DNA from: Thalia democratica
Lineage: Eukaryota
Assembly (NCBI GenBank): GCA_965202585.1
Contig: OZ241828.1
Span: 24,738,001-24,802,000 of the forward strand
Length of the DNA: 64,000 nucleotides
Reading direction: 5' to 3'
The notes beneath the pieces were generated by a model. It ran no database searches and was not told the DNA's origin. It saw nothing but the letters and a program-made list of their open reading frames with translations. Positions 9,801-57,000 of this stretch are shown here, in pieces (the first letter of the stretch is position 1; each line of letters begins with the position of its first letter). The translations under genes were made by a program, and so were the position numbers.

Positions 9801-12351
9801 AAAAAATGTTATATGTAAGCAACAATAAAAAAATTGTGTTGTTTTATTGAACTTTGCCTCGATTTCTTTGACAAAATTATTTTTAATCCAAACGACCCGT
9901 TTTAGAAAGTTAAGTTTAAAATTATTTATAAAGAAACTTAATTTCAAGCAATATATTAAAATAAAATTTTCAGATTTTTATAAATTTATATTTTACTTTA
10001 CGGATACTATAAGTAATTTAATTTTAGAATTTGTATTCCATGTGTTTTTCAAACCACATTAGTACAGATTTCGACCAGTTTTTTATATAGTTCAAATGTA
10101 TTTCTTAACATTTATACACATACTTGTATCTTGGTATACACACAAAATATGACTTTACTACTCTCTAAAAGATCAACAAAGTAGCAGCTCAAAGAAGCTC
10201 ATTAAAAAGTATACATAAAAGCTGACTCATCACCTAATTTGTGACAGTCATGCTTTCAAATTATAAAAACTCTGCTGTAACTGACTGTGCAGATAATGAA
10301 AAAAATTATGACTATATCGAGCGAATTAAAGAAAAAGTTTTCTTACAGATATTCTAACTTGACAAAATAAGTTTTTTTCGGCCAATTAAGAATTACACAC
10401 CAAAATTTATCTTTTTGACATAAATACTTTACAGACGAACTAAGTTAGGTTATCTATTATACTTAGTTTATTTTCTATTATGCATTTAGTCTTTTTTACT
10501 TTATCCTCGATCATACATGTACTCATGATTTAAAAAAAATAAGATTGCAATATGTATAAGTTTTTCACACAAAAAAAGAGCAATTCAAAAACATTATAGG
10601 CTAGTTTTCAAACAATTAAATTTAAATTGTATCTTAAAGAGGATTTTTTCCCTTAATATACTATGACTGGTTAGTATGAGTATATTAAAACATTAATTAA
10701 AAAATGTTTAATACTTAATTATCACAAAATCTGATATAGGCATGCAACGCTTATTTAAAAATCTTACTTCACTTCCAAACATCAGTTTTGAAAAAAAAAT
10801 CACAAAGTTTTAATTTTTGCGTATTAATAAACTTAAATAAAACATAAAAATCTTTAAAAATGCTTTTAGAAGCAAAACTATATGCTTACGAATGACCTCA
10901 GCGTAATATTTCATCAATGTTTTATAACTACTTAATAAGTAGCAAGTTAGCAAAATTTTGTAGACTGTTGATATAGCTTTTCAACAAAAAAAATAAGCTA
11001 TAAAATTTTATAACACGATAAGGAGTTATAAAGATAAGAGTCAATAAAACCACATTTGAAAATAATTTGTTGTTTCAGTAATAAAACTGCTAACTTGTCT
11101 TTTTTGAAATACATTTCACAGTCACAGAATTATAATTGCTTGATATAAAGTAGTTACAACGCAAAACTATTTTCTTAAGTCTTTGTTTTTTTTTAGTAAA
11201 ATTTTATGTAAAGTAAACAGATCACATATATAAAGTAAATTCAGTGTCTATAAAGTAAATTAAAACTTTAGTCCTTGTATTTGGTATTTAAAAATTTAAA
11301 CATGTGTATAATATTCCAAACAAACAAGTTTCCTCAAAAAAAATCTAAAGGATTTTAATCAATATTCCGGAAAAAATTTGTTTCCAAAATTAAAAAAAAA
11401 ATTTTTGCTTTAAATCTTAATTAAATTAGAATTTTTATCAGTTTTTGTTTGTTTAGCTATATGAACATACGTAGTTGCAAAAAGGCGTTGAAATATCGAA
11501 AAATGCTACGTTTGTCCTTATAAAACAAGTAAAATTTTAAAAAATAAAACATTTATTTTTGTTTCAGCTAAAATTACTTTTTTTTTAAGTATCTTTAAAA
11601 GTTATATTTATTAAAACATAAGTTTTAAAAATTAATTAATGTTTTCAAATAATGTAGCTAATTTGTAATCTAAATTACTTGTGAAAGATTTTTAAACTAA
11701 ACCGGTTCACGTCTTAAGTCTGGTCTGGATAAACTTTAAACTAATAAACGATGAAAGCCTTTGACATTTAATTTTTATTAGTCAATAAAAACGCAATGTC
11801 TGCAATTTTCATTAAGCAATTAAATCACAGAAAGTTTTAATTTTGTACTCTAAAGTTTATTACAATCTGATGTAAATAAATACGCATCAGATTTACTATT
11901 AGCAAATATTTAGATAATATCTATAAGTATAGGTGGTTAACATAATTTTAATTGTTTGCATAAGAATATGAGAACAACTTTAATTTACAGCTCAGTTTAA
12001 AACAAGTTTAGCAGCTTTTAAAATAAAGTAAGTGAAATTTTTAAAATTTAAGATTATATTTTTCTTCTCGATAAAAAATACTTCAGTAAAAAAATAAATT
12101 AGTATTTTTAGGAAACAGAATATACTAAAGGTGTTTGTTTTCAAAAGTCTGAAATTTTGAGCCACATCTTTTTAGAAAATTAAAAACTATTCAATGGATA
12201 AAAGTAAAAATTTTTAAAAAGATTATTAGAGTTTGTTAGAGTTAAGTTTTAGCAAATAAAATGGATTATACTAACAACTAAACATCTTACAAAAACGTAC
12301 TAACTTTTAGAAATGACATTTGTTGTAGTGCTTTGTTAGACATATATATAT

Positions 12352-12543
12352 AAGTTTATTTCAAGATGAAAAAACATGCAGAACTCGAGTTTCGTGCCTA
12401 TGCACTCCTTAAATGCAAAAAAAAAGTTCAAAATAAAGCAAAAACCAAAACACTCCAATTGAAGTTAAAAATTTAAGTATAATTATGCTTAAATTAGGCA
12501 TGAAGTTTGAGTTCTGCAAATTTTTACTTCTTGAAATAAACTT
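12352..12543. repeat. Older homologous palindromic element with degenerate hammerhead arms
   Basis: Arms 12352-12400 and 12495-12543 are reverse-complementary at 41/49 positions. The minus-strand arm reads TGCAT-TTAAGGA-GTGC(ATAG)GCAC-GAAAC-TCGA-GTT-CTGCA...CATCTTGAAATAAAC-(TA)n. Confidence 0.75.
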
Positions 12544-15500
12544 TTTTTTTAACAAAGCCCTTTAGGTGAACTTTGTGTTGAAGAATTTAACTTATTTCTA
12601 TATATGTATATAATTAGAAGTATTTAACCTAATCTAACTACCAAGTAAAACTTCTTTTATAAACCAATTAAAAACCTGTTAAATTGACTGAAGCTAGATT
12701 TAAGCCAATGGAATTAGACAAAAAGCAAAGATTAAAAGTTTTCGTTACGTAAATAAACTCGTTGTACATAAGAAACCACAGTTGTTAAAATAAATTTTTA
12801 GAAAAACAATTTGCGTAACTTTAACGCCCGGGCATCAGACATGAAGTAATAAACCAAAGAATAATACGTATAATTACTGTTAAAGAAAATTGTTTGTTAA
12901 AATTCTACAATCATTAAAAGCTGAGTTTTTATTACTTGTAAGTTTCACTTTTGGTTTTATATACTTAGCTTAAAGCTATAATCCTTTAACTTTTATGTTA
13001 CACTCAAAATAACATTAAGTAAGAAAATATTGTGATATAAAAAGGCTTGTAAAAATTAACAGTTAAGTTTTAAAATATAGAAGTTAAGTTTTAAAAACTT
13101 TTGTTAAAGTTTAGCGATTGTTCCATAACTAAAATGTTATTAAGTTGTAAGCATTGCAACAAAAAACTACTTTTAGTAGGATTATGTGTCATAGTTTTTC
13201 TATAAAATAGAACAACTAATCAAATAAGGTGATACTACAATTGCTAGTTAGGTGATTTTACATCAGCAGGTAAAATTGTTTACTGTGAGAATAAAATTTT
13301 ATGTGACAAAGTTTTAAAACTATTTTATATAATTGATTTAGGTAAGAACAACCCAAGTTTGACTATTTTTTTTTAAATTAAGTTCAATTTTATAACTTTA
13401 ATAATTTATATTAAAAATTAAGTTAGTTTTTAAATCTGTAAGTTTATAAAAAAAAAGCCATTATATTTCCTTAAAACGTTCGACAAGTAGTTTCAAACTT
13501 ATTTAGCCGGTGAAATATTTTTGCATATCGAAAACACGTGTATTATCAGCAACGTTGTGTTAAACCAAATAGATTAATTAAGCTTTCAACACCCGGCAAA
13601 ATTAGTGTTTTGGAATTATATCAATTCGTTTGTGATAAATAAAAGTATCTTAGCAAAAGAACCAATGAAAATAAAATTTGACCTCATGGGTATTTTCTTT
13701 AATATTTTTTAATTTAATTGGTTTTAAATGAACTTTTATGTTAAAACCTAATAAAAGTCTTAGTCTAATAAAAATTTTGGCGTTAACTGATTAAATTTAG
13801 CTTTACAGAATTGTAATTTCAAACTTTTAAAACATTTTATAAATTATACTAGATAACCTATATTTTATAGTTTATTAGTTTAGTTTCGTTGCATAAATGA
13901 AATATGTTGTAATTTGAAGTAAAACCTAAATTATAGAGACGCACTTTTCACACCGTATAATAAAATACTAAATACAGTAGTATTAGGTGTTTTGTTGGTT
14001 ATTGAGCTTTTTTGTATAAAAAAGGAAACTTTCTGATTACTTATAAAATAAAATCAAATATTTAAACTTTTTATGTAAACATTATTTTTAACAGGTTACA
14101 TTTAACAGTTAGTATTATATAAAAGTCAAAATAAAATTTAAAGTAAACATAAAAGGCATGTTTTTAGTTTATCTAAATAGTTTATACATAGTGATAAAAT
14201 ATAGTTGTTAAATTTCTGAACAAAATTAGTTTAAATGTCTAACAAAAACTTTATTGAAATATCAAACCAAAAAAATTAAAGTTAAAATTAATATTTCAAA
14301 ATTGATTAATATAAAGTTTAAATGAAAAAAGTTTCACTTTTTGTTCAATAACCTTGAAGTTACCTAACAACGCAAATGGACTTAATTTATATAAAATAAA
14401 ATTCTTACAACACTTTTTACAAGAAAAAAAACATATTTACGTAGGTTTGAAATAATCAGTTTATGTAAGCGGTAAAAGTATTGTTTTTATATGTCAAGTA
14501 GTGTACTTCACGAGTTAGAAGTTATTTTTAAAGCTTTAAAATTGTTTTAAGTATATCAATCCTACTAAACGAAAATAGTTCAAACTTTAAAAACATTAAA
14601 AAAGATTTTATCCAAATTTAACTTTTGTCTATAAAGTAACTAACTTTTCTAGCAAAACAATAAGTAGTAAAACTATTTATATAATTTTGTCTATAATGAC
14701 TTTGTAACACAATGTTATAGTAAATCATCCAATTTTTGTGGCTCAGTTTGTAGGTATACATACGTCTTAAATGAAAGTAATATTAGCCAATAATAGTTAC
14801 ACATTTTAGTAATTTACTGAGAAACGAAGTTTTGCCATGAGAAAACTATACTTTACATTTTAAAAACCACAAAATAAAAAGTTTGTTAGTGTCTGTCGCA
14901 AAAAACTAAAGCTTAGCCGTTAAGATAAGTAAGAAGTATCATTAACCGATCTATGAGGTATATACTTGTATATATATATACACTATTTTGAAATGTTTAA
15001 AAGCAAACAAAAGTTTTTTACCTAAATTAAAGAAATCTTTTTCAGTATACATGTGTTTATTATCAAGTGGTTTACTTTATTTTTCCGTTTCTATTAGTTT
15101 TTTATTTATTTAAAACTGATTAGTTTAATTTTTGTGATGAAGACAACTTAGCCATTGTTTTAATGAAGAGTTTAATAAAAAAAACGAACACAAAACCTTA
15201 AGAAACGTTAACATTATTTCTCATTTAAAATTTTTAAACCTTTTTTTTATTAGTTGTTAATGAGGCTTTGGTATAGTTGTGTACTGATACTTAATATAGT
15301 AAAATTACAAAATAAAATATATAAAATTTACTTTAAAAAACTTTTCTGTAATTTTTTTTTCAAGTTTTTTTTTTAGCTTGTAAGCGTTTTATAACTAATT
15401 TAATTACAAAAATACAAAGCTTTATTATCAAATCTATAATCATTAACTTTTTTTTGTAAATATTATCTTATATACAGTTGTGATAAGATAAAGAAATAAG

Positions 15501-30191: not shown

Positions 30192-30299
30192 TTACAGTTA
30201 CAATTGTAGAAAAACCATGTCACAAGTCATGAGTTTTGTGAACATGTTGCTATATTAGTTATATTCCACATGTTTGAAATTAGTTTCTCCTGTCAACAG

Positions 30300-30500
30300 G
30301 ACAATGGAATAGGGTTGTTGTTTGACATCGACGGTGTGATCATGAGAGGAAAGAAGCTGATCCCGGCAGCCAAGCATGCCATGGAGTGCCTCACTGATGA
30401 CAACGGAAAGTTTGTGGTGCCCACTGTGTTTGTCACCAATGCTGGAAATTCATTGTGCGAAACAAAAGCTGAAAAATTGTCCAGTGTACTCGATATGGAG
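30300..30500 (+). CDS. HDHD5: HDHD5 exon 2, HAD motif I (LLFDIDGV) and motif II (FVTNAG)
   Basis: CAG| acceptor at 30299, GAG|GTGAGA donor at 30501. Translation DNGIGLLFDIDGVIMRGKKLIPAAKHAMECL...VPTVFVTNAGNS matches the HAD-IIA CECR5/HDHD5 family from recall. Confidence 0.95.
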
Positions 30501-30932
30501 GTGAGAGTTTTTGAATGTTTATTTTTGAGTGAAAAGTTTTTGATTAAAAATATTAATTATCTGTTAAATGTCATTTAAAAAGAATATACCTTTATTCAAA
30601 TATCATGTTTTCAATTCAAAAATCATATAAGTTGTACATTTTTAAATTTTTTTTTATTATAATGTATAACATGTCTTTCAAATATTTGACATGCTCTTGC
30701 AACCATTTTAAGTCTAAGATAAGCAAGTCAACACTGTGTCAATAAAGAATAAGTATGCATATGTGTGTTTTTTATAATATAAATTTTTGTGAATTTTTAG
30801 CAATCAATATCATGCAAAGATTATTAAAAAATAATACAATCTTACTCCTTATATTTATACCCCTTACTTACAAAGCATTTAAACAAAAACAGCACCTTCT
30901 TTGTGTAATACTAATCTCAATTCCATCCCCAG

Positions 30933-33766: not shown

Positions 33767-34125
33767 GTATTTATTAACATTATTTGTTTTAAATATATAG
33801 TTATAACTGTTTACATATAATTACAACTTTACATAAATAAATCTAGTTTTAAGTTAAAAAACTTTAATTTAAAAACTTGTACTTTTAAATTTGATTAATT
33901 TTAATATTATTACTTATTTTGTTGTTTGCCTAGTTTAGGTGTTTGTTTTACTAATAGTTTTATAAATAATTTTTGATTAGGTATATAACAAACATTTTAA
34001 TAAGTTTTTCAACAAATCAAAGATATTTGTAGTATTGATATTTATTTTATTTTTATTTCAGATGTACTTGTTATAATTAAATATTTACCCTAAAGGTAAA
34101 ATTACTTAAGTCTTAATTAGGTTAA

Positions 34126-34807
34126 GGGCATAGGGGGGGGTAAACACCCTTTTTTGGTTTTTGATCTTATTTTATATAGTTTTTACTAAGCTACAAGATG
34201 CTTTTTACAGATTTTGAAAATTCAAAATATTTTTTTAGATATAGCCGGTCAAATTCGGAGGCTACAATAGGATCCTTATGGGAGGCGCAAACTAAAACGG
34301 CAAATAACTAGAAATCACTAAAAATCTATCTCCTCCTACATTTTTTGAGCTAACTACGTCAAATTTTCAGGAAATGTTCCTTGCAATATTTAGAAAATTC
34401 TGTCGGAACAGAATTTAAAAAAATTAAAAAATAAAAATTTTATTATAAAAAAACTAAAAAAAAAATGTTTTTTTTGTTTATTTTTTTTATAAAATTTTTT
34501 TTTTTCAATTTTTTAAAAATTCCTTCCGACAGAATTTTCTAAATATATCAAGGAACGTTTCCTGAAAGTTTGAGGTAGTTATCTCAAAAAACAAAGGAGA
34601 AGATAGATTTTTAGTGAAATAGTCTATTTTTGCTGTTTTAGTTTGCGCCTCCCATAAGAAACCTATTGTTGCCTCCGACTTTGACCGGCTTTATCTCAAA
34701 AATTATTTTGATTTTTTTAAATCTGTAAAAAGCATCTTGTAACTTAGTAAAAACTATATAAAATAAGATCAAAAACCAAAAAAGGGTGTTTACCCCCCCC
34801 TATGCCC
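34126..34807. mobile_element. 682-bp fully palindromic foldback MITE with TTAA target duplication (Kolobok/T2-like termini) in HDHD5 intron 6
   Basis: TTAA|GGGCATAGGGGGGGGTAAACACCC...GGGTGTTTACCCCCCCCTATGCCC|TTAA. The arms are reverse-complementary along essentially the whole ~340 bp. The superfamily call is inferred from the TTAA TSD plus RR..YY ends. Confidence 0.9.
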
Positions 34808-36416
34808 TTAAGTACATATCTATTGTGGTTAGTGTATTTATAAGTAAAAATTTATGATGTATTCTTGCGTATATTGTATATTAATTTTAGTATTATACAA
34901 AAATAATCTTTTTTTACTTAGGGTGTTATTTATTGTTTACAAATGAATTTTTATACTAAAGTATTTAGCAGACTTAAAAAAATAAAAATAATTTATTGTT
35001 TTTTACAGTCGCGTCAAGTCATTACTGCATCATGTAACGAAAAGAAAAAAATTAAAAAGGTAAAATTTATTTATCTTAAAAATATTACTATAAAAATCAA
35101 CAGTATGGCTTTAGAAATTTTTATGTATTATTATAAATTAGACATATAATATATTAAAATTTAAAGTATAATTTAGCTGGTTTTGGTTTAAATAACTACA
35201 ATTTGTAAGTTTTTTTAAACTGGTCATTTAAAACTTAAACTTGTGATGTTTTAATTTTTATGACTAGTCAATTGTTGCTCATACATTTAGAAGTCTATGA
35301 GAAAGTTGCTAAGTATAAAAAATGTATTAAAAACAAAAATAAACAGTAAAACTTTGGTACAGTTTAAAATAATTAAGTAAAATGTTTCAATTGGTTTTTG
35401 TCACATATTATGTACAACTTTAGTAGGAGTGTTAAAATTATTACTTAAAATTCAAATACTGAAAACCAATTTAAAACACAAGTAAATAATGCTAATTGTT
35501 TATGAAGAAAGTAGCTTTTACCAAATGCCATTATGACGTATTTGTTATTTTCATTGTGACGCGTACCATGAATTATTTAAACATTTTCTCCTTCTACACA
35601 AAAAAAAACAATATTTTTCAAACTAATATTGTTTTTTTGAAGTTGAAGGACATAATTCTATAAATTTTTTCTTTCTTAGTTGGATTAAAAATAAATTAAT
35701 TTGTTTGTCCTAAAAAAATTTTCCTTCAGACAAAACTATCGCATTAGTAAAAATAAAGTCCGATTGATTTTTTTGCAGCCAAATTCAATTCTTAAAAAAG
35801 CACATTTGAAAATTTTAATCTTTGCTGCATTCAAATCATTTTAGTTTTTTCTGCTAAAACATTTGGTATATTGATTTTCCTTGCAGCTTTTTCAGTATTT
35901 CAAATGTCAAAGAAAATTCTATTGATTTTAGACTTAATGCAATGCTTTTAAACTTGGGGTTTGATGAAAATGTATTTAAAAAAATATTGTTTTATAGATT
36001 TTATAATTTTTTTTGGTGATTTTTCAGGCAATCTTTGTTTTTCTGTAGTTTAAAGCATTTAAATAAAGAACTTACAAGTATTTTAAGGTGTACAAAACAA
36101 TTTTCATATAACATACACTAAATAACAAAATGTATTGGTTTATTTCAGAAGTTGTGGAACTTTTTTGATAATCGTGTACAATATTTCGGATTTGTTTAAT
36201 TCTTTTTATGTTTGTTTATCAAATATTGACACGAATCAAGAGTTGTTAGAAAAAAAAGTAAAATAGATAAATGTTTAAATTGATAATCAAAATTCAACAT
36301 TTAAGAAAAAAAATCTCAATATTTAAGACACTTACAGGAACCAAAACTTATAACGCATCTTTAAAAAGATATAACTTTCTAATTATTTATCAAAATTAAT
36401 AAACTTATACTTACAG

Positions 36417-46415: not shown

Positions 46416-46896
46416 TTAGAGAGCACTTTTTTACTTTGAATGTAATTTTTTACGTAATGTATCTAGTGTTATTCATTGAATAAAATAAATTATAAAGCTT
46501 GATCTAATTGGCTGTTAAATTGAATGAATTAAAGTACTCAGCGAGTAAGACAAACTGTTAATAAAAACCTAGGTTGTACATTATTGTACCATTTTAAATT
46601 TATGTTTGTTGCAAGTAAAAGATTAGAAAAACATCAGCGAAAATTCAAATAGAGCATAAAACTGGACTTGAGTATTGCGTGAGACAATCTCAAGTTGACA
46701 TAATACGTCGACGGTTGTGACTGAATGACGAGTTTCACGAAGATCAGTACCCAAGTTTCTACCGAAAGTTTGTGGTCTGTAACCGGTGTGATCAAAACTT
46801 TTATTTGTGTGTAAAAAAGATTGCTCGATTTAATGAAATGTAAAGAGCTTATTTAATTATTAGTAAAAATAATGTGCAAATTAAGTATTATGGTTA

Positions 46897-47049
46897 CTAC
46901 GTGGTTTCGGTGGCAAAAAAAACAACCTTTTCAAAAGTGATAAAATAGTAAACTGCTTTAAACATAACTTTCAATATTATTATAAAGAAGTTTACTATTC
47001 TCTTGTACATGAAAGGGTCGTAATTTTGTTTGCCACCGAAACCAGGTAG
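46897..47049. mobile_element. 153-bp TA-flanked MITE (Tc1/mariner-like by inference)
   Basis: TA|CTACGTGGTTTCGGTGGCAAA ... TTTGCCACCGAAACCAGGTAG|TA, 21-bp TIR with 1 mismatch, plus an inner inverted pair ATAGTAAACT / AGTTTACTAT. Confidence 0.8.
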
Positions 47050-47094
47050 TAAGAAAAATATTTAATTTTTACATTATTATGTGTAGTTACCAGT

Positions 47095-51900: not shown

Positions 51901-53856
51901 TGTATTGTTTGTAGACTATAATTTGATAGTTTTAAAATTAAAGGTTGTTCTACATTAACATAATTCTTAATTTATTTTATTTTTTTATATCAGCTTAACT
52001 CAAACCAATTTTCAAATATTTGTCATTTTTAATATTATTATTTTACCACAGATTTACAATTTGAAAATCCGCTCTGCGGTGAAACTGAGTAATTGTTTAT
52101 TCTCAAAAATAATAAATTATTAATTATTAGAGTTTTACCAAAAACATTGTTGTCATATTATAGTAAAAGCTTGTATTTAGTTTTACGTGTATGCTATCAG
52201 TTTTAAATTTTTAGAGATGTATTTTGTTTATATTTTTTAGTTTTGATAATAGTAGATATTGTTATTTTCAATTAGTTTAGTGTGAACGGTGATTTTATTA
52301 TCATTTATAAAATGAAATACTAAGCACAAATTCTATTTTTACATTACGGTACTTTACATTATGTCGTATAATTGTTTATACCAAGCAAAATTAATTAAAA
52401 CAATTATAAAAAAGTCAACTAAATAGTTAGAAAAATTATAGAAAAAAAGTAAATAACGTTACATTTAGACGATATGTTGTTTAATGCGTATGTAGATATG
52501 TAAAGTTATCTATAAACTTTATAACTGATCACAAATCCGACAAATGTGTAAACACTTAGTAATTTAAGTTTGAAGTACTTGACATTATTAAAAAAGTCAA
52601 ACAACTAAAGTTAGTCCACTACATTCAAGGTTGTTTAATATTTATCGCAGTAATTAGAAAAACAATTTTAAAGCTTAATTTAACGTTTTTAGAATAGATA
52701 ATTGTTTGTATACTTTTACTTAGCAAAGCAAACATATTGCAATACATCTTACTTTAGTTTGTACAATTTATATATCCGAACGAAGTAGTTTGATGTACTA
52801 CAATAACTTATTGTTTGAAAAAGTTTGCATGTTTTGTTTTAATTCAATTTCATGAAAAAAAAAGTTTGTGCTTGAACTTTAAGATTACGGTTTTTAAATA
52901 AACTTGTTTTTAATTTCATTTTCAAGTTGTATTTTGTTAATTTGTTCTGCGGAAAATCTCAAGACGGTAAGAAGTAAGTTTATAGAAAGTTGGCAGACAA
53001 AACGTATTTCAAGCAGCATTAAAAAAATTTTGATTTACAGTACGTGCCTTGTATATAAAGCTATAGTAAATTGGACTGTTCGCAGCAAAACAATAAAAAT
53101 AAAATGTTAATTAACATAAATAAAACAACTGATAAAACAATGTTATAGTTGAAACGAAACAAGATTCCTTTACTGATGCAAATACTATGGTTTGCCGATG
53201 AGCAATCGAAAAAAACTATTATTCTCATTTAAAAGGATATAAGTTTAGCGACATGAAGTAGTATTTTTTGGTGCTTAAAAAGAACATTTTTCAAGTATTG
53301 TTTTTGTCTAGCTTTGAAATGATAGTTTTTACAGTATACATTTATACAACGTCAAGCGTTTTATGAAAAAGATGGTTATTACCATATAATTATTTTATAT
53401 TTGGTTTAGACAACATGTAAATTTCGAATTTAAGCGTATTTAACCTGAAGTTTATAAAAAACATAGAAACTAAACCTTTAAAAACAAAGTATATTTTTAT
53501 ATTGCATAGTAAAAATGACTTTAGCTAATAAATTATAAAAATAAGTTTAGAAATAAAAATAAAGCACAGTTTGAAATAAACTATTAACTTTTAAATAAAA
53601 ATATTAGTTAATGTGACAATATATAGTTTATTTTATCTGCTTGAATAGTTGACTCTTATTACTAATCAATACTAAACAAAACAGTTAATGCCATGAATAA
53701 AATAACAACGAATTATTTCTAATGTATACACAAATGATCTAACATATATGTATATATATATATAGAATTAAGTTATTTAACTTAATAAATTAAATTTTTC
53801 ACACTGAGCCCACCTTGAGGGCTTTATTAATAAAAAGGTTTATTTAAAGATGCAAA

Positions 53857-53903
53857 ACTCAAAGGACTCGAGTTTCGTGACTATTCACTCATGAGCTTCA
53901 AAA
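53857..53903 (-). ncRNA. Minimal type-I hammerhead ribozyme motif, core-mutated (CUCAUGA in place of CUGAUGA)
   Basis: Minus strand: TTTTGAAG-CTCATGA-GTGA(ATAG)TCAC-GAAAC-TCGA-GTC-CTTTGAG. Stem II is perfect, the stem III loop TCGA is palindromic, the cleavage triplet is GUC, and stem I pairs with wobbles. Confidence 0.7.
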
Positions 53904-53914
53904 CAGAAGTTTTG

Positions 53915-53961
53915 TTTTGAAGCTCATGAGTAAATAGTCACGAAACTCGAGTCCTTTGAGT
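53915..53961 (+). ncRNA. Second hammerhead motif (mirror arm), core-mutated, with one stem II mismatch
   Basis: CTCATGA 53923-53929, GTAA(ATAG)TCAC, GAAAC 53942-53946, TCGA, GTC 53951-53953. Confidence 0.65.
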
Positions 53962-53987
53962 TTTGCATCTTTAAATAAACCTTTTTT

Positions 53988-54024
53988 ATATATATATTTA
54001 TATATATTTGTATATATATATATA
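53988..54024. repeat. Interrupted (TA)n microsatellite abutting the hammerhead palindrome; another (TA)n lies at 53743-53764
   Basis: Direct reading. Confidence 0.9.
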
Positions 54025-57000
54025 TTAAAACTTTGTTTTGACTAAAACTCACGAGTATTTCTTAGTTAAAACATACCAAATAATTGTAAACATACCTAGT
54101 TGAGAACAATAGTTTGGAATTGCAAGAAACTGAAAACCTAAAACTATTTGCATTCTATTTTACCTTAAAATAACTAGGAAAGGTTTAAAGAATTTAAGGA
54201 CCATAAAAATAGGAAAATTAAACCAAAACTTTTTTGGTTATACATGTTGTTTGCTTTATAAATTTTAAAAAGTCTGTAAAAAACATTTGTTAATACTTCT
54301 GGTTTTCTTTATTTTAGTTCATTTAACAAAGAAGACGTTTTGTAGTTTCTTGAATCACTTATTATACAAAGTTTGAGCTCTAATCCAAAAAACTGTAATT
54401 AGAAAAAAATAAGTTAGTCCTAGCTCTACTGTACGCTAAAGTATATGATTAATAAGTAATAAACTAGACTACTTTTTGATTTTTTTGTATCAAACTACTC
54501 AAAAATATAAATAGACAACTGTTAGTACAAATCTTTGCAGTTTTTCACTTATTTATACCTTAGTCCATTTTATATAGTTATAACTTTTGTAAATAGATAT
54601 TTTGCTGATTTTTATTAACATATTTGTAGTCTATATATTTTAAAACTAAAATTATTGTTTAAAAAAAAAGCAAATTACTCAGAAGTTATTGTTTGTATTG
54701 TTTTTGTTTCTAACAACTCACTTACAACGTATTTTACTTTTGTTTTACAAGATTAAACTAATAGAAGCTTGTACTAGTATTATTTAAATAAAAGTAATCT
54801 TTCAGTTGTAAAATACAATTTTACTTCAACTAAATAAAACCAAAAAAAAACATATTTTTACTGCAACACGTTAAATGTTTAATATATAGATGTAGTTTGG
54901 TCAAGTGTAAGTGTTCAAAGCACAGTCGTTATAAACCAAGTTATCTACAGTTTTGCGGTTTAAAAATTTATATTGTTTGCATCTAACTCGACAAGTTTTA
55001 GAAGCATAACTATCTGTGTTTGAACTTAAAAATATACAATAATTTTACTTTTGTACGGTTTATAAATGTTAACACAGCACTGATCGTTTCTTTTCATACT
55101 TCGGTTGTTTTTTGAAAATGTTAAACACTAAGTGATGATCTTGAGTTCCGCGTCGATCAAAATGGAATATAGTTTACGTTAAAACTTTATTTTAAAGTTT
55201 GTTGTATTTAATCTTTACAATAGTCGTTTAAACTTTAAACGAAGACTACAATGTAACTATTTTAGGCTACATATTTTGTGCAATTAAGAATTTTTAATAG
55301 TTAAAGCTTTAAATAACTATTTTTATTTTTTTGCTGAGCATTGTACAAATGTGCTTTTAAAGCCTTATAATTTCAAATTATTAACTTATAGATTTTTTAA
55401 GATAACTTTAAGAGAAAGTAATTGTGCAATCCACGATTTGTTATAGCTTTTGCTCCATTATGTGTGTAGTTTTTTAAAAAAAGTTAATAAGTTGAACAGT
55501 TTTTAGACAATCTTTGCTTTGTACTAGATATAAAAACTTTGTATAACAATTAATGTTTTTACCAATAAAGTTTAACATTTTAGTTAAGCTAACTTCTTAC
55601 TTAATAGTTAAAAAAAACTATTTTAAGACCTCTAAAATAATTACCGATAGTAACTTAATTATGTTGTACAAAGACGTATCTTACTAAATTAATGCTTTGC
55701 AAGATAATTTAATTTGAAAATAAACTATAAAGTAACTTTATTAGTAAATTTGCCTTTTTAATGATCTCATGATTTACTGGTTTTTCATTATCATTATTTA
55801 ACAAATTGAACTTTAATTCTATTAGTTAGATCATATTTATACACTAAATTATATTAGTCAAAACTTCTAGTATATTGAGTATATTAACTATTTGTAATAT
55901 GTTTTACGTCTATTCATACTTTCTTTTTGTAAAAATACTGTACTTAGTTTATGCATTTAACCATACAATGCATGCTAAAGTTTTAAATGTTGATGTCAAG
56001 TCATTTAAATGAAAAAAGTATTACGATTAATGTTTTTTACAAAATAATCAAAAGTATTAAATTTTGTTATATGTTTTCACTAAATTATTAACAGATTAAT
56101 TTTACATGACCAAAAGTATGTACTTAGTTTTTCACTAAAACATGATTAAGTTTATCAAATTAGTGTCGCTTAAATTATTTCAATGACAAATTTATCTTCA
56201 TAGGTGGTTCGAACTAAATTAAATTTCTAACAAGTTATTTTGATGTATTGAACTAAAAACAGATATAAAACTTTTATCTATACAAAATTATTAAAATTTT
56301 ACTAAAAAATCATTGTACATAATGTTTGGATAGTATAAGCTTGTGTTTAGTTTCACTTGTTGTCTATCAGTGTTAAATTTTTAGAGATGTATTTTGTTTT
56401 ATTTTCAAGTCTAGATAGTAGTAGATATTATTATTTTCAATTAATTTTAATGTAAAAGATGTTTTTGTACCTTATATCATTTATAAAACGAGATAATAAG
56501 AAAAAATTCATGTATATTTGTTTTTACACTATACTACTTTACATTATTTCGTATAATAGTTTTTTTCTATATACCTAGAAAAGTTGAAAACAACAATCAC
56601 AGAATCAATAACTTAATTGCAAAAATTAGAGAAAATAGTATACATAATTATACCTATACTATATGTTGTTTAATGTTAATGTGTATATGTAAAGTTTTTC
56701 TATATACTTATAAGTGTAGTTCATTAAAAATCCGACATATGTGTAAATACTTATCACTTAAATTAGAATTAAATAAAGTAATTGACATTATTAAGAAAGT
56801 CTAACAACTAAAGTTAGTCTACTACATTCAAGGCTGTTTAATATCTATCGCAGTAATTAGATGAAAAATTTAATGCCTAATTTTGCGTTTTTGAAATAGA
56901 TACTTTTTTGTATACTTTTACTTAGCAATGCAAACAGTTTTGCAATACATCTTACTTTAGTTTGTACACTTTATATATCAGACTGAACAAGTTTGATGTA

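Follow-up and report, generated by a model that had tools for sequence, protein, structure and literature searches.

A hammerhead relic in two probable Penelope-type insertions at (TA)n microsatellites of Thalia democratica

The near-perfect palindrome at positions 53832-53986 of the window, by which we mean the whole 64-kb stretch of DNA that was analysed, is real but ordinary: it is one more decayed copy of an insertion class that has already been described for Penelope-like elements (PLEs). This locus, referred to as copy 1 throughout, was probably produced as a short non-coding insertion by a PLE reverse transcriptase (RT) and GIY-YIG endonuclease (EN), the template being a stretch of about 145 nt at the 3' end of either a hammerhead-bearing PLE or a non-autonomous element derived from one. 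The structural marks of a PLE insertion were found twice in the window, in copy 1 and in an older copy at 12353-12593 (copy 2), and both loci are best filed as PLE-type insertions that carry a hammerhead relic.

The hairpin of 155 bp that an earlier note had described from the letters of this DNA is present. It consists of two arms of 77 nt each (53832-53908 and 53910-53986), which are 97% complementary, are separated by a 1-nt spacer and are mismatched at two places, 53886/53932 and 53906/53912. Each arm reads outward as TTTGAAG, CTCATGA, stem II, GAAAC, TCGA, GTC and CTTTGAG, followed by AAATAAAC and then by a T-run. In the sense arm (53832-53908, - strand), the hammerhead-like motif occupies 53902-53858, with CTCATGA at 53895-53889 and the C of GTC at 53865; in the inverted twin arm (53910-53986, + strand), it occupies 53916-53960, with CTCATGA at 53923-53929 and the C of GTC at 53953. 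The two cleavage positions that had been proposed, 53953 (+) and 53865 (-), both fall on this C, the predicted cleavage site. Helix II of the arms is a 4-bp stem with the loop ATAG. The sequence GTGA(ATAG)TCAC had been reported for each arm, but it is intact in the - arm only; the + arm reads GTAA/TCAC, the A at 53932 forming an A.C mismatch, and this mismatch was gained later than the insertion. The 31-nt core string is confined to the two arms, with an expectation of zero in shuffled sequence, and the window is AT-rich throughout (21-31% GC).

The alignment of the two copies indicates that the element is larger than the 155-bp palindrome and that an adjoining tail belongs to it. The tail of copy 1 (53765-53831, - strand) is continuous with the sense arm as a 3' extension of the sense unit, is missing from the inverted arm and has its homologue in the tail of copy 2. 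The earlier note had placed a (TA)n repeat on the right of the palindrome, and this block was found at 53987-54027, where it abuts the inverted arm; however, there is a left block as well (53744-53764, with a perfect run at 53751-53764), which abuts the end of the tail, so that the 67 bp of the tail lie between this block and the palindrome. The inserted unit of copy 1 is thus 53765-53986, with the sense orientation on the - strand.

The earlier note had also called for a search for other head-to-head pairs, and within the window one such pair was found. BLASTN, nhmmer and a profile search with all four arms and the tails returned copy 2 as the sole further copy, lying in the opposite orientation at 12353-12593, with its sense unit on the + strand and an identity of about 80% to copy 1. 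It is made up of an inverted arm (about 12353-12435) with the hammerhead-like motif at 12418-12376 on the - strand, a decayed sense arm (about 12455-12543) and a tail (12544-12593), and the unit is bounded by (TA)n flanks at 12342-12352 and 12594-12607. When aligned in opposite orientation, both copies have the same layout of (TA)n, inverted arm, sense arm, one-sided tail and (TA)n. The tails, 50-67 bp long and present on the sense side only, are collinear and share 79.6% identity over 54 nt (E 1.4e-7), and the inversion junction of either copy is found about 10 nt or less from one and the same landmark. Perfect (TA)n runs of at least five units occur only eight times in the window and make up 0.2% of its bases; four of the eight abut the two copies. 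The hairpin of copy 2 has decayed to 84% over 49 nt, with indels. Its arms have decayed unequally, the sense arm having accumulated 18 private differences together with indels and the inverted arm three, and the sense arm holds about 18 extra nucleotides within helix II.

It was reported that PLE insertions often consist of an inverted, 5'-truncated copy adjoining a sense copy, that they often carry a short tail of 30-40 bp at one end only, and that they prefer microsatellites, with (TA)n as the target of the Naiads and of nearly all families of the Hydra clade; this clade universally carries canonical hammerheads, which lie near the 3' end, and in it they coincide with (TA)n targeting (Craig et al., 2021, PMC8557442). 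Both copies in the window share with Hydra-clade insertions the adjoining inverted and 5'-truncated copy, the extension at one end only, the (TA)n microsatellite target and the position of the hammerhead near the 3' end (PMC8557442). The link to a PLE terminus that the earlier note had drawn fits this layout, by the inverted twin, the one-sided tail and the (TA)n target. In PLE insertions and in copies 1 and 2 alike, the (TA)n target makes target duplications unreadable: both flanks of each copy are (TA)n, and no target-site duplication can be delimited. The copies differ from PLE insertions in having no RT/EN open reading frame (ORF) or longer body, as they represent no more than some 145 nt of the 3' end, in their longer tail (50-67 bp against 30-40 bp) and in their mutated hammerhead core.

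Adjacent Penelope ORFs for GIY-YIG or RT, which the earlier note had suggested looking for, are lacking within the 64-kb window. None of its ORFs exceeds 124 aa, and the 14 ORFs compared with Pfam, among them the four longest and those nearest to both copies, gave no RT or GIY-YIG match. We infer a parent PLE for copies 1 and 2. Exact patterns that were unbiased with respect to the core (helix II, GAAAC and helix III; GAAAC, helix III and the 3' flank) had zero matches in collections of metagenome, genome and viral contigs, and the motif string had no match in a full-text literature search.

Based on these features, an origin may be proposed in which a short RNA, with its hammerhead about 95 nt from the 3' end, would have served as the template for reverse transcription primed by the two nicked strands of a (TA)n target. 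Priming at the 3' end of the RNA would have given the sense copy with its tail, and a second, internal priming at a U-run/UAU with microhomology to (TA)n would have given the inverted arm without a tail. In copy 1 the inverted arm reaches only as far as the T-run, finishing with TAT, which has microhomology to (TA)n. Joining of the two cDNAs at the 5' end of the RNA would then have created the palindrome without a spacer, and the hammerhead would already have been inactive in the template RNA. It was also observed that the far end of the tail (53765-53790 in copy 1; 12575-12593 in copy 2) repeats the arm-end motif in direct orientation, TTAAATAAAC compared with TTAAATAAC. This repetition may mean that a short motif for recognition or microhomology is common to the two priming sites, as far as low-complexity sequence in only two copies can suggest.

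A comparison of all four arms bears directly on how the inversion arose. Among the 76 alignment columns with a base in all four arms, 11 are copy-specific, meaning that the base shared by the two arms of one copy is found in neither arm of the other copy, whereas no column is orientation-specific. Within each copy, the arms were therefore derived from a single template of their own, and the inversion was made, or homogenised, separately in each copy instead of being inherited as a mobile foldback.

The main alternative is that the foldback together with its tail is itself mobile, as a MITE-like or hairpin element of PLE-end origin that was spread by a TA-targeting DNA transposase or through a hairpin RNA. 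The overall layout common to the two copies, whose junctions fall about 10 nt or less from one landmark, and the TA-rich flanks, which resemble those of Tc1/mariner-type MITEs, both speak for it; the shared junction position is compatible with a template whose 5' end is defined, yet it leaves some room for mobility of the whole unit. The best raw Rfam scores of the whole palindrome also point in this direction, namely 62 bits for MIR4208 and 47.8 bits for MIR1435, two long-hairpin plant miRNA precursor families whose scores are both below their own thresholds. However, the ends of the element, once the tail is counted, are not inverted repeats: the unit starts with an arm end and finishes with a tail end, and terminal inverted repeats at both ends, as expected of a MITE, are absent. 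The 11 copy-specific and zero orientation-specific states would in addition require concerted evolution of the arms. The MITE-like foldback of the earlier note accordingly gives way for the unit 53765-53986, with its one-sided tail, non-inverted ends and copy-specific arms, and we consider mobility of the foldback unlikely. Compared with MITEs and foldback DNA elements, the two copies are likewise small and AT-rich, with a strong hairpin and TA-rich flanks, but they differ in their asymmetric termini and their copy-specific arms; a target duplication of fixed length is not readable in the (TA)n flanks.

A true symmetric foldback flanked by TTAA does occur in the window at 34122-34811 and looks different, which also weighs against a mobile foldback at copy 1. 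This element of about 690 bp is a near-complete palindrome with arms of 183 nt at 93% and of 150 nt at 85%, has G-rich terminal inverted repeats and carries TTAA at 34122-34125 and 34808-34811; it resembles a piggyBac-type MITE.

The assignment of the motif to the hammerheads was evaluated with the Rfam model Hammerhead_1 (RF00163), for which the gathering score is 34 bits. In scans limited to the arms, Hammerhead_1 ranked first among 4227 Rfam families for three arms, namely the two of copy 1 and the inverted one of copy 2. The + arm of copy 1 scored 16.5 bits (E 0.075) and the - arm 14.9 bits, both over the full-length model (1-45) and on the outward-reading strand, and the inverted arm of copy 2 scored 15.7 bits, also over the full length. 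Run on single arms, the model named in the earlier note was thus the best one for these three, but with all three scores (14.9-16.5 bits) at less than half of the gathering score. At gathering thresholds, no Rfam family, Hammerhead_1 included, is passed anywhere in the window.

Canonical metazoan type-I hammerheads have a helix I of about 6 bp (6-7), a 4-bp helix II with G10.1-C11.1 and a helix III that measures 1-2 bp and ends in a small palindromic loop of 4 nt (Cervera and de la Pena, 2014, PMC4209133). The motif of the arms has this architecture, with helices of 7 bp (I), 4 bp (II) and 2 bp (III) and the loop UCGA. With RF00163 and with the newt, Schistosoma and PLE/retrozyme hammerheads it shares the 7-bp helix I and the 4-bp helix II closed by G10.1-C11.1 (PMC4209133), and with canonical metazoan type-I hammerheads also the GAAA box, the 2-bp helix III with its palindromic loop UCGA and the GUC site. 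G12-A13-A14, the A15.1-U16.1 pair and H17 are present as GAAAC-TCGA-GTC in copy 1 and as GAAAC-TCGA-GTT in the inverted arm of copy 2. At helix III lies the 8-nt palindrome ACUCGAGU, which would suit the formation of dimers and for which a duplex of -10.7 kcal/mol was calculated. The earlier reading of the motif as a minimal type-I hammerhead with a short palindromic helix III is borne out by this architecture and by the top-ranking Rfam family.

The 5' core box, in contrast, departs from C3-U4-G5-A6-N7-G8-A9 in all arms: it reads CTCATGA in both arms of copy 1, whereas in copy 2 it is TTAAGGA (UUAAGGA in RNA) in the inverted arm and the further decayed TTAAAAA in the sense arm. With a descriptor of our own, no canonical CUGANGA hammerhead was found in the window. 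Relatives with an intact core, which the earlier note had thought worth seeking, are thus absent from it as far as CUGANGA is concerned, but copy 2 does keep GAAAC...GTH. When one mismatch in the core was tolerated, the sole match in the window was the - arm of copy 1. This loose descriptor produced 1.2 chance matches per shuffled window, and a strict descriptor with the observed stem lengths and one core mismatch, whose thresholds were chosen post hoc, matched in none of 400 dinucleotide shuffles of the window. The arms are accordingly regarded as hammerhead relics and not as members of RF00163, both the core box and the Rfam score falling outside that family, and they presumably descend from an intact CUGANGA hammerhead.

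In copy 1, the two arms have C in place of G5 (CUCAUGA). The earlier note had taken this change to be common to both arms, and CTCATGA is read in each. The template RNA would therefore already have carried C5. Ruffner, Stormo and Uhlenbeck are said to have shown in 1990 that G5 is essential for hammerhead catalysis. With an essential G5 and C5 in the template, the hammerhead motif of copy 1 is, judging from its sequence, very probably catalytically dead. Predicted folding supports the inactivity of the native arm: its minimum-energy fold, at -8.0 kcal/mol, is not a hammerhead, compared with -0.7 kcal/mol for the hammerhead fold. In the predicted minimum-energy fold the mutated core box is paired to the helix III region (ACTCGAG), a pairing that the change from G5 to C allows and through which the native arm is predicted to take a non-hammerhead fold. 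The earlier expectation that this copy is probably inactive is in line both with the loss of G5 and with this predicted fold. The same change makes the core box a perfect 8-nt palindrome, CTCATGAG (53921-53930 and 53888-53897).

Between the two copies, GAAAC, the 8-nt palindrome ACTCGAGT, GTH and the ends of helix II are kept. Helix II changes from GTGA/TCAC in copy 1 to GTGC/GCAC in copy 2, and in helix I one pair that is A-U in copy 1 is C-G in copy 2. When the hammerhead structure was mapped onto the alignment of three arms, 92% of the positions were paired and two double compensatory pairs were seen, compared with 22-44% in slid controls. With only two copies and three arms, the covariation tests were not significant (59 of 500 shuffles; p of about 0.065 in a substitution simulation), and covariation was dropped as structural proof for lack of power. 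At the level of sequence comparison, the stem covariation is suggestive of the hammerhead structure.

It could still be argued that the hammerhead likeness arose by chance in an AT-rich foldback repeat without ribozyme ancestry, given that the core box differs between the copies (CTCATGA against TTAAGGA and TTAAAAA), that the Rfam scores are far under the gathering score, that the loose descriptor gives 1.2 matches per shuffled window and that the native arm prefers a fold other than the hammerhead (-8.0 against -0.7 kcal/mol). Such a coincidence would nevertheless have to place Hammerhead_1 first among 4227 families for three arms, one of them in a copy that is only 80% identical, and to yield a strict descriptor match that none of 400 shuffles reproduced. 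It would also have to keep GAAAC, ACTCGAGT and GTH alongside compensatory changes in stems I and II, and to do so within an insertion pattern that is that of hammerhead-bearing PLEs (PMC8557442). We regard it as very improbable.

A transcript across both arms is predicted to form a hairpin of 77 bp at about -119 kcal/mol. The description of one ribozyme on each strand is formally true, but in such a two-arm transcript the predicted hairpin buries the motif. Extremely unlikely is an exaptation of the locus as a hairpin RNA gene, that is, as an endo-siRNA or miRNA-like source directed, for example, against the parent PLE family: transcripts from either strand would form this near-perfect hairpin, and the sub-threshold miRNA precursor matches reflect the hairpin shape, but the decay of the hairpin in the older copy (84% over 49 nt, with indels) indicates that the hairpin is not conserved, and no Rfam family is matched at threshold. 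Under the PLE insertion reading, the locus of copy 1 is today most likely without function and forms at most a long hairpin RNA or a DNA cruciform.

Two further identities were considered and ruled out. A small palindromic loop capping helix III permits an active dimer of two hammerhead copies (PMC4209133); the two arms of copy 1 do not qualify as such a dimer, since a single transcript holds one sense arm and one antisense arm, which pair with each other. In metazoan non-LTR retrozymes, hammerhead-bearing units of 150-450 bp are repeated directly in tandem (Cervera and de la Pena, 2020, PMC7229834). Copy 1 resembles them in being small, AT-rich and non-coding and in its type-I hammerhead, and retrozymes are thought to depend on PLE machinery (PMC7229834; Li et al., 2026, preprint, doi 10.64898/2026.07.22.740005). 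Retrozyme tandem repeats with active hammerheads, however, release circular RNAs, whereas here an inverted twin and a dead core are found; a retrozyme identity was excluded, there being one sense unit with an inverted arm and no direct tandem copy.

Two other features of the window may be mentioned. A foldback at 46868-47078 has arms of 55 nt at 85% with 101 nt between them, and its right arm holds CCACCGAAACCAGGTAG, which is slightly similar to the 3' half of the hammerhead; this foldback lacks both a corresponding core box and a palindromic helix III, and it does not pass the descriptor. At 30270-30578 (+ strand) lies an exon of a CECR5/HDHD5-like hydrolase of the HAD family (Pfam Hydrolase_6, E 3e-12), and the gene probably has further exons up to about 33170. 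The closest database fragments to this exon, with 83-86% identity, come from marine samples, namely JGI sample 3300018950 and the ENA marine metagenome PRJEB4352, which we take to be the Tara Oceans project.

Copy 1 provides a clean and small example of the PLE insertion signature, that is, an inverted twin, a one-sided tail and a (TA)n target, and this signature can be confused by annotators with MITEs or with miRNA hairpins. Taken together, the two copies also point to an inexpensive genome-wide test, which would ask whether the activity of the hammerhead restricts the set of RNAs that become inserted. The core-killing changes are common to both arms within each copy and differ between the copies (C5 in copy 1; U3 and A5 in copy 2). 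An active hammerhead would cut the 5' part of the RNA from the 3' end at which reverse transcription starts. It seems unlikely, though conceivable, that only ribozyme-dead RNAs can template insertions that retain the sequence 5' of the cleavage site. If it were true, a census of core mutations in head-to-head or otherwise 5'-retaining copies, as compared with tandem copies, would serve as a readout of hammerhead activity in vivo and would show the role of the ribozyme in the PLE life cycle.
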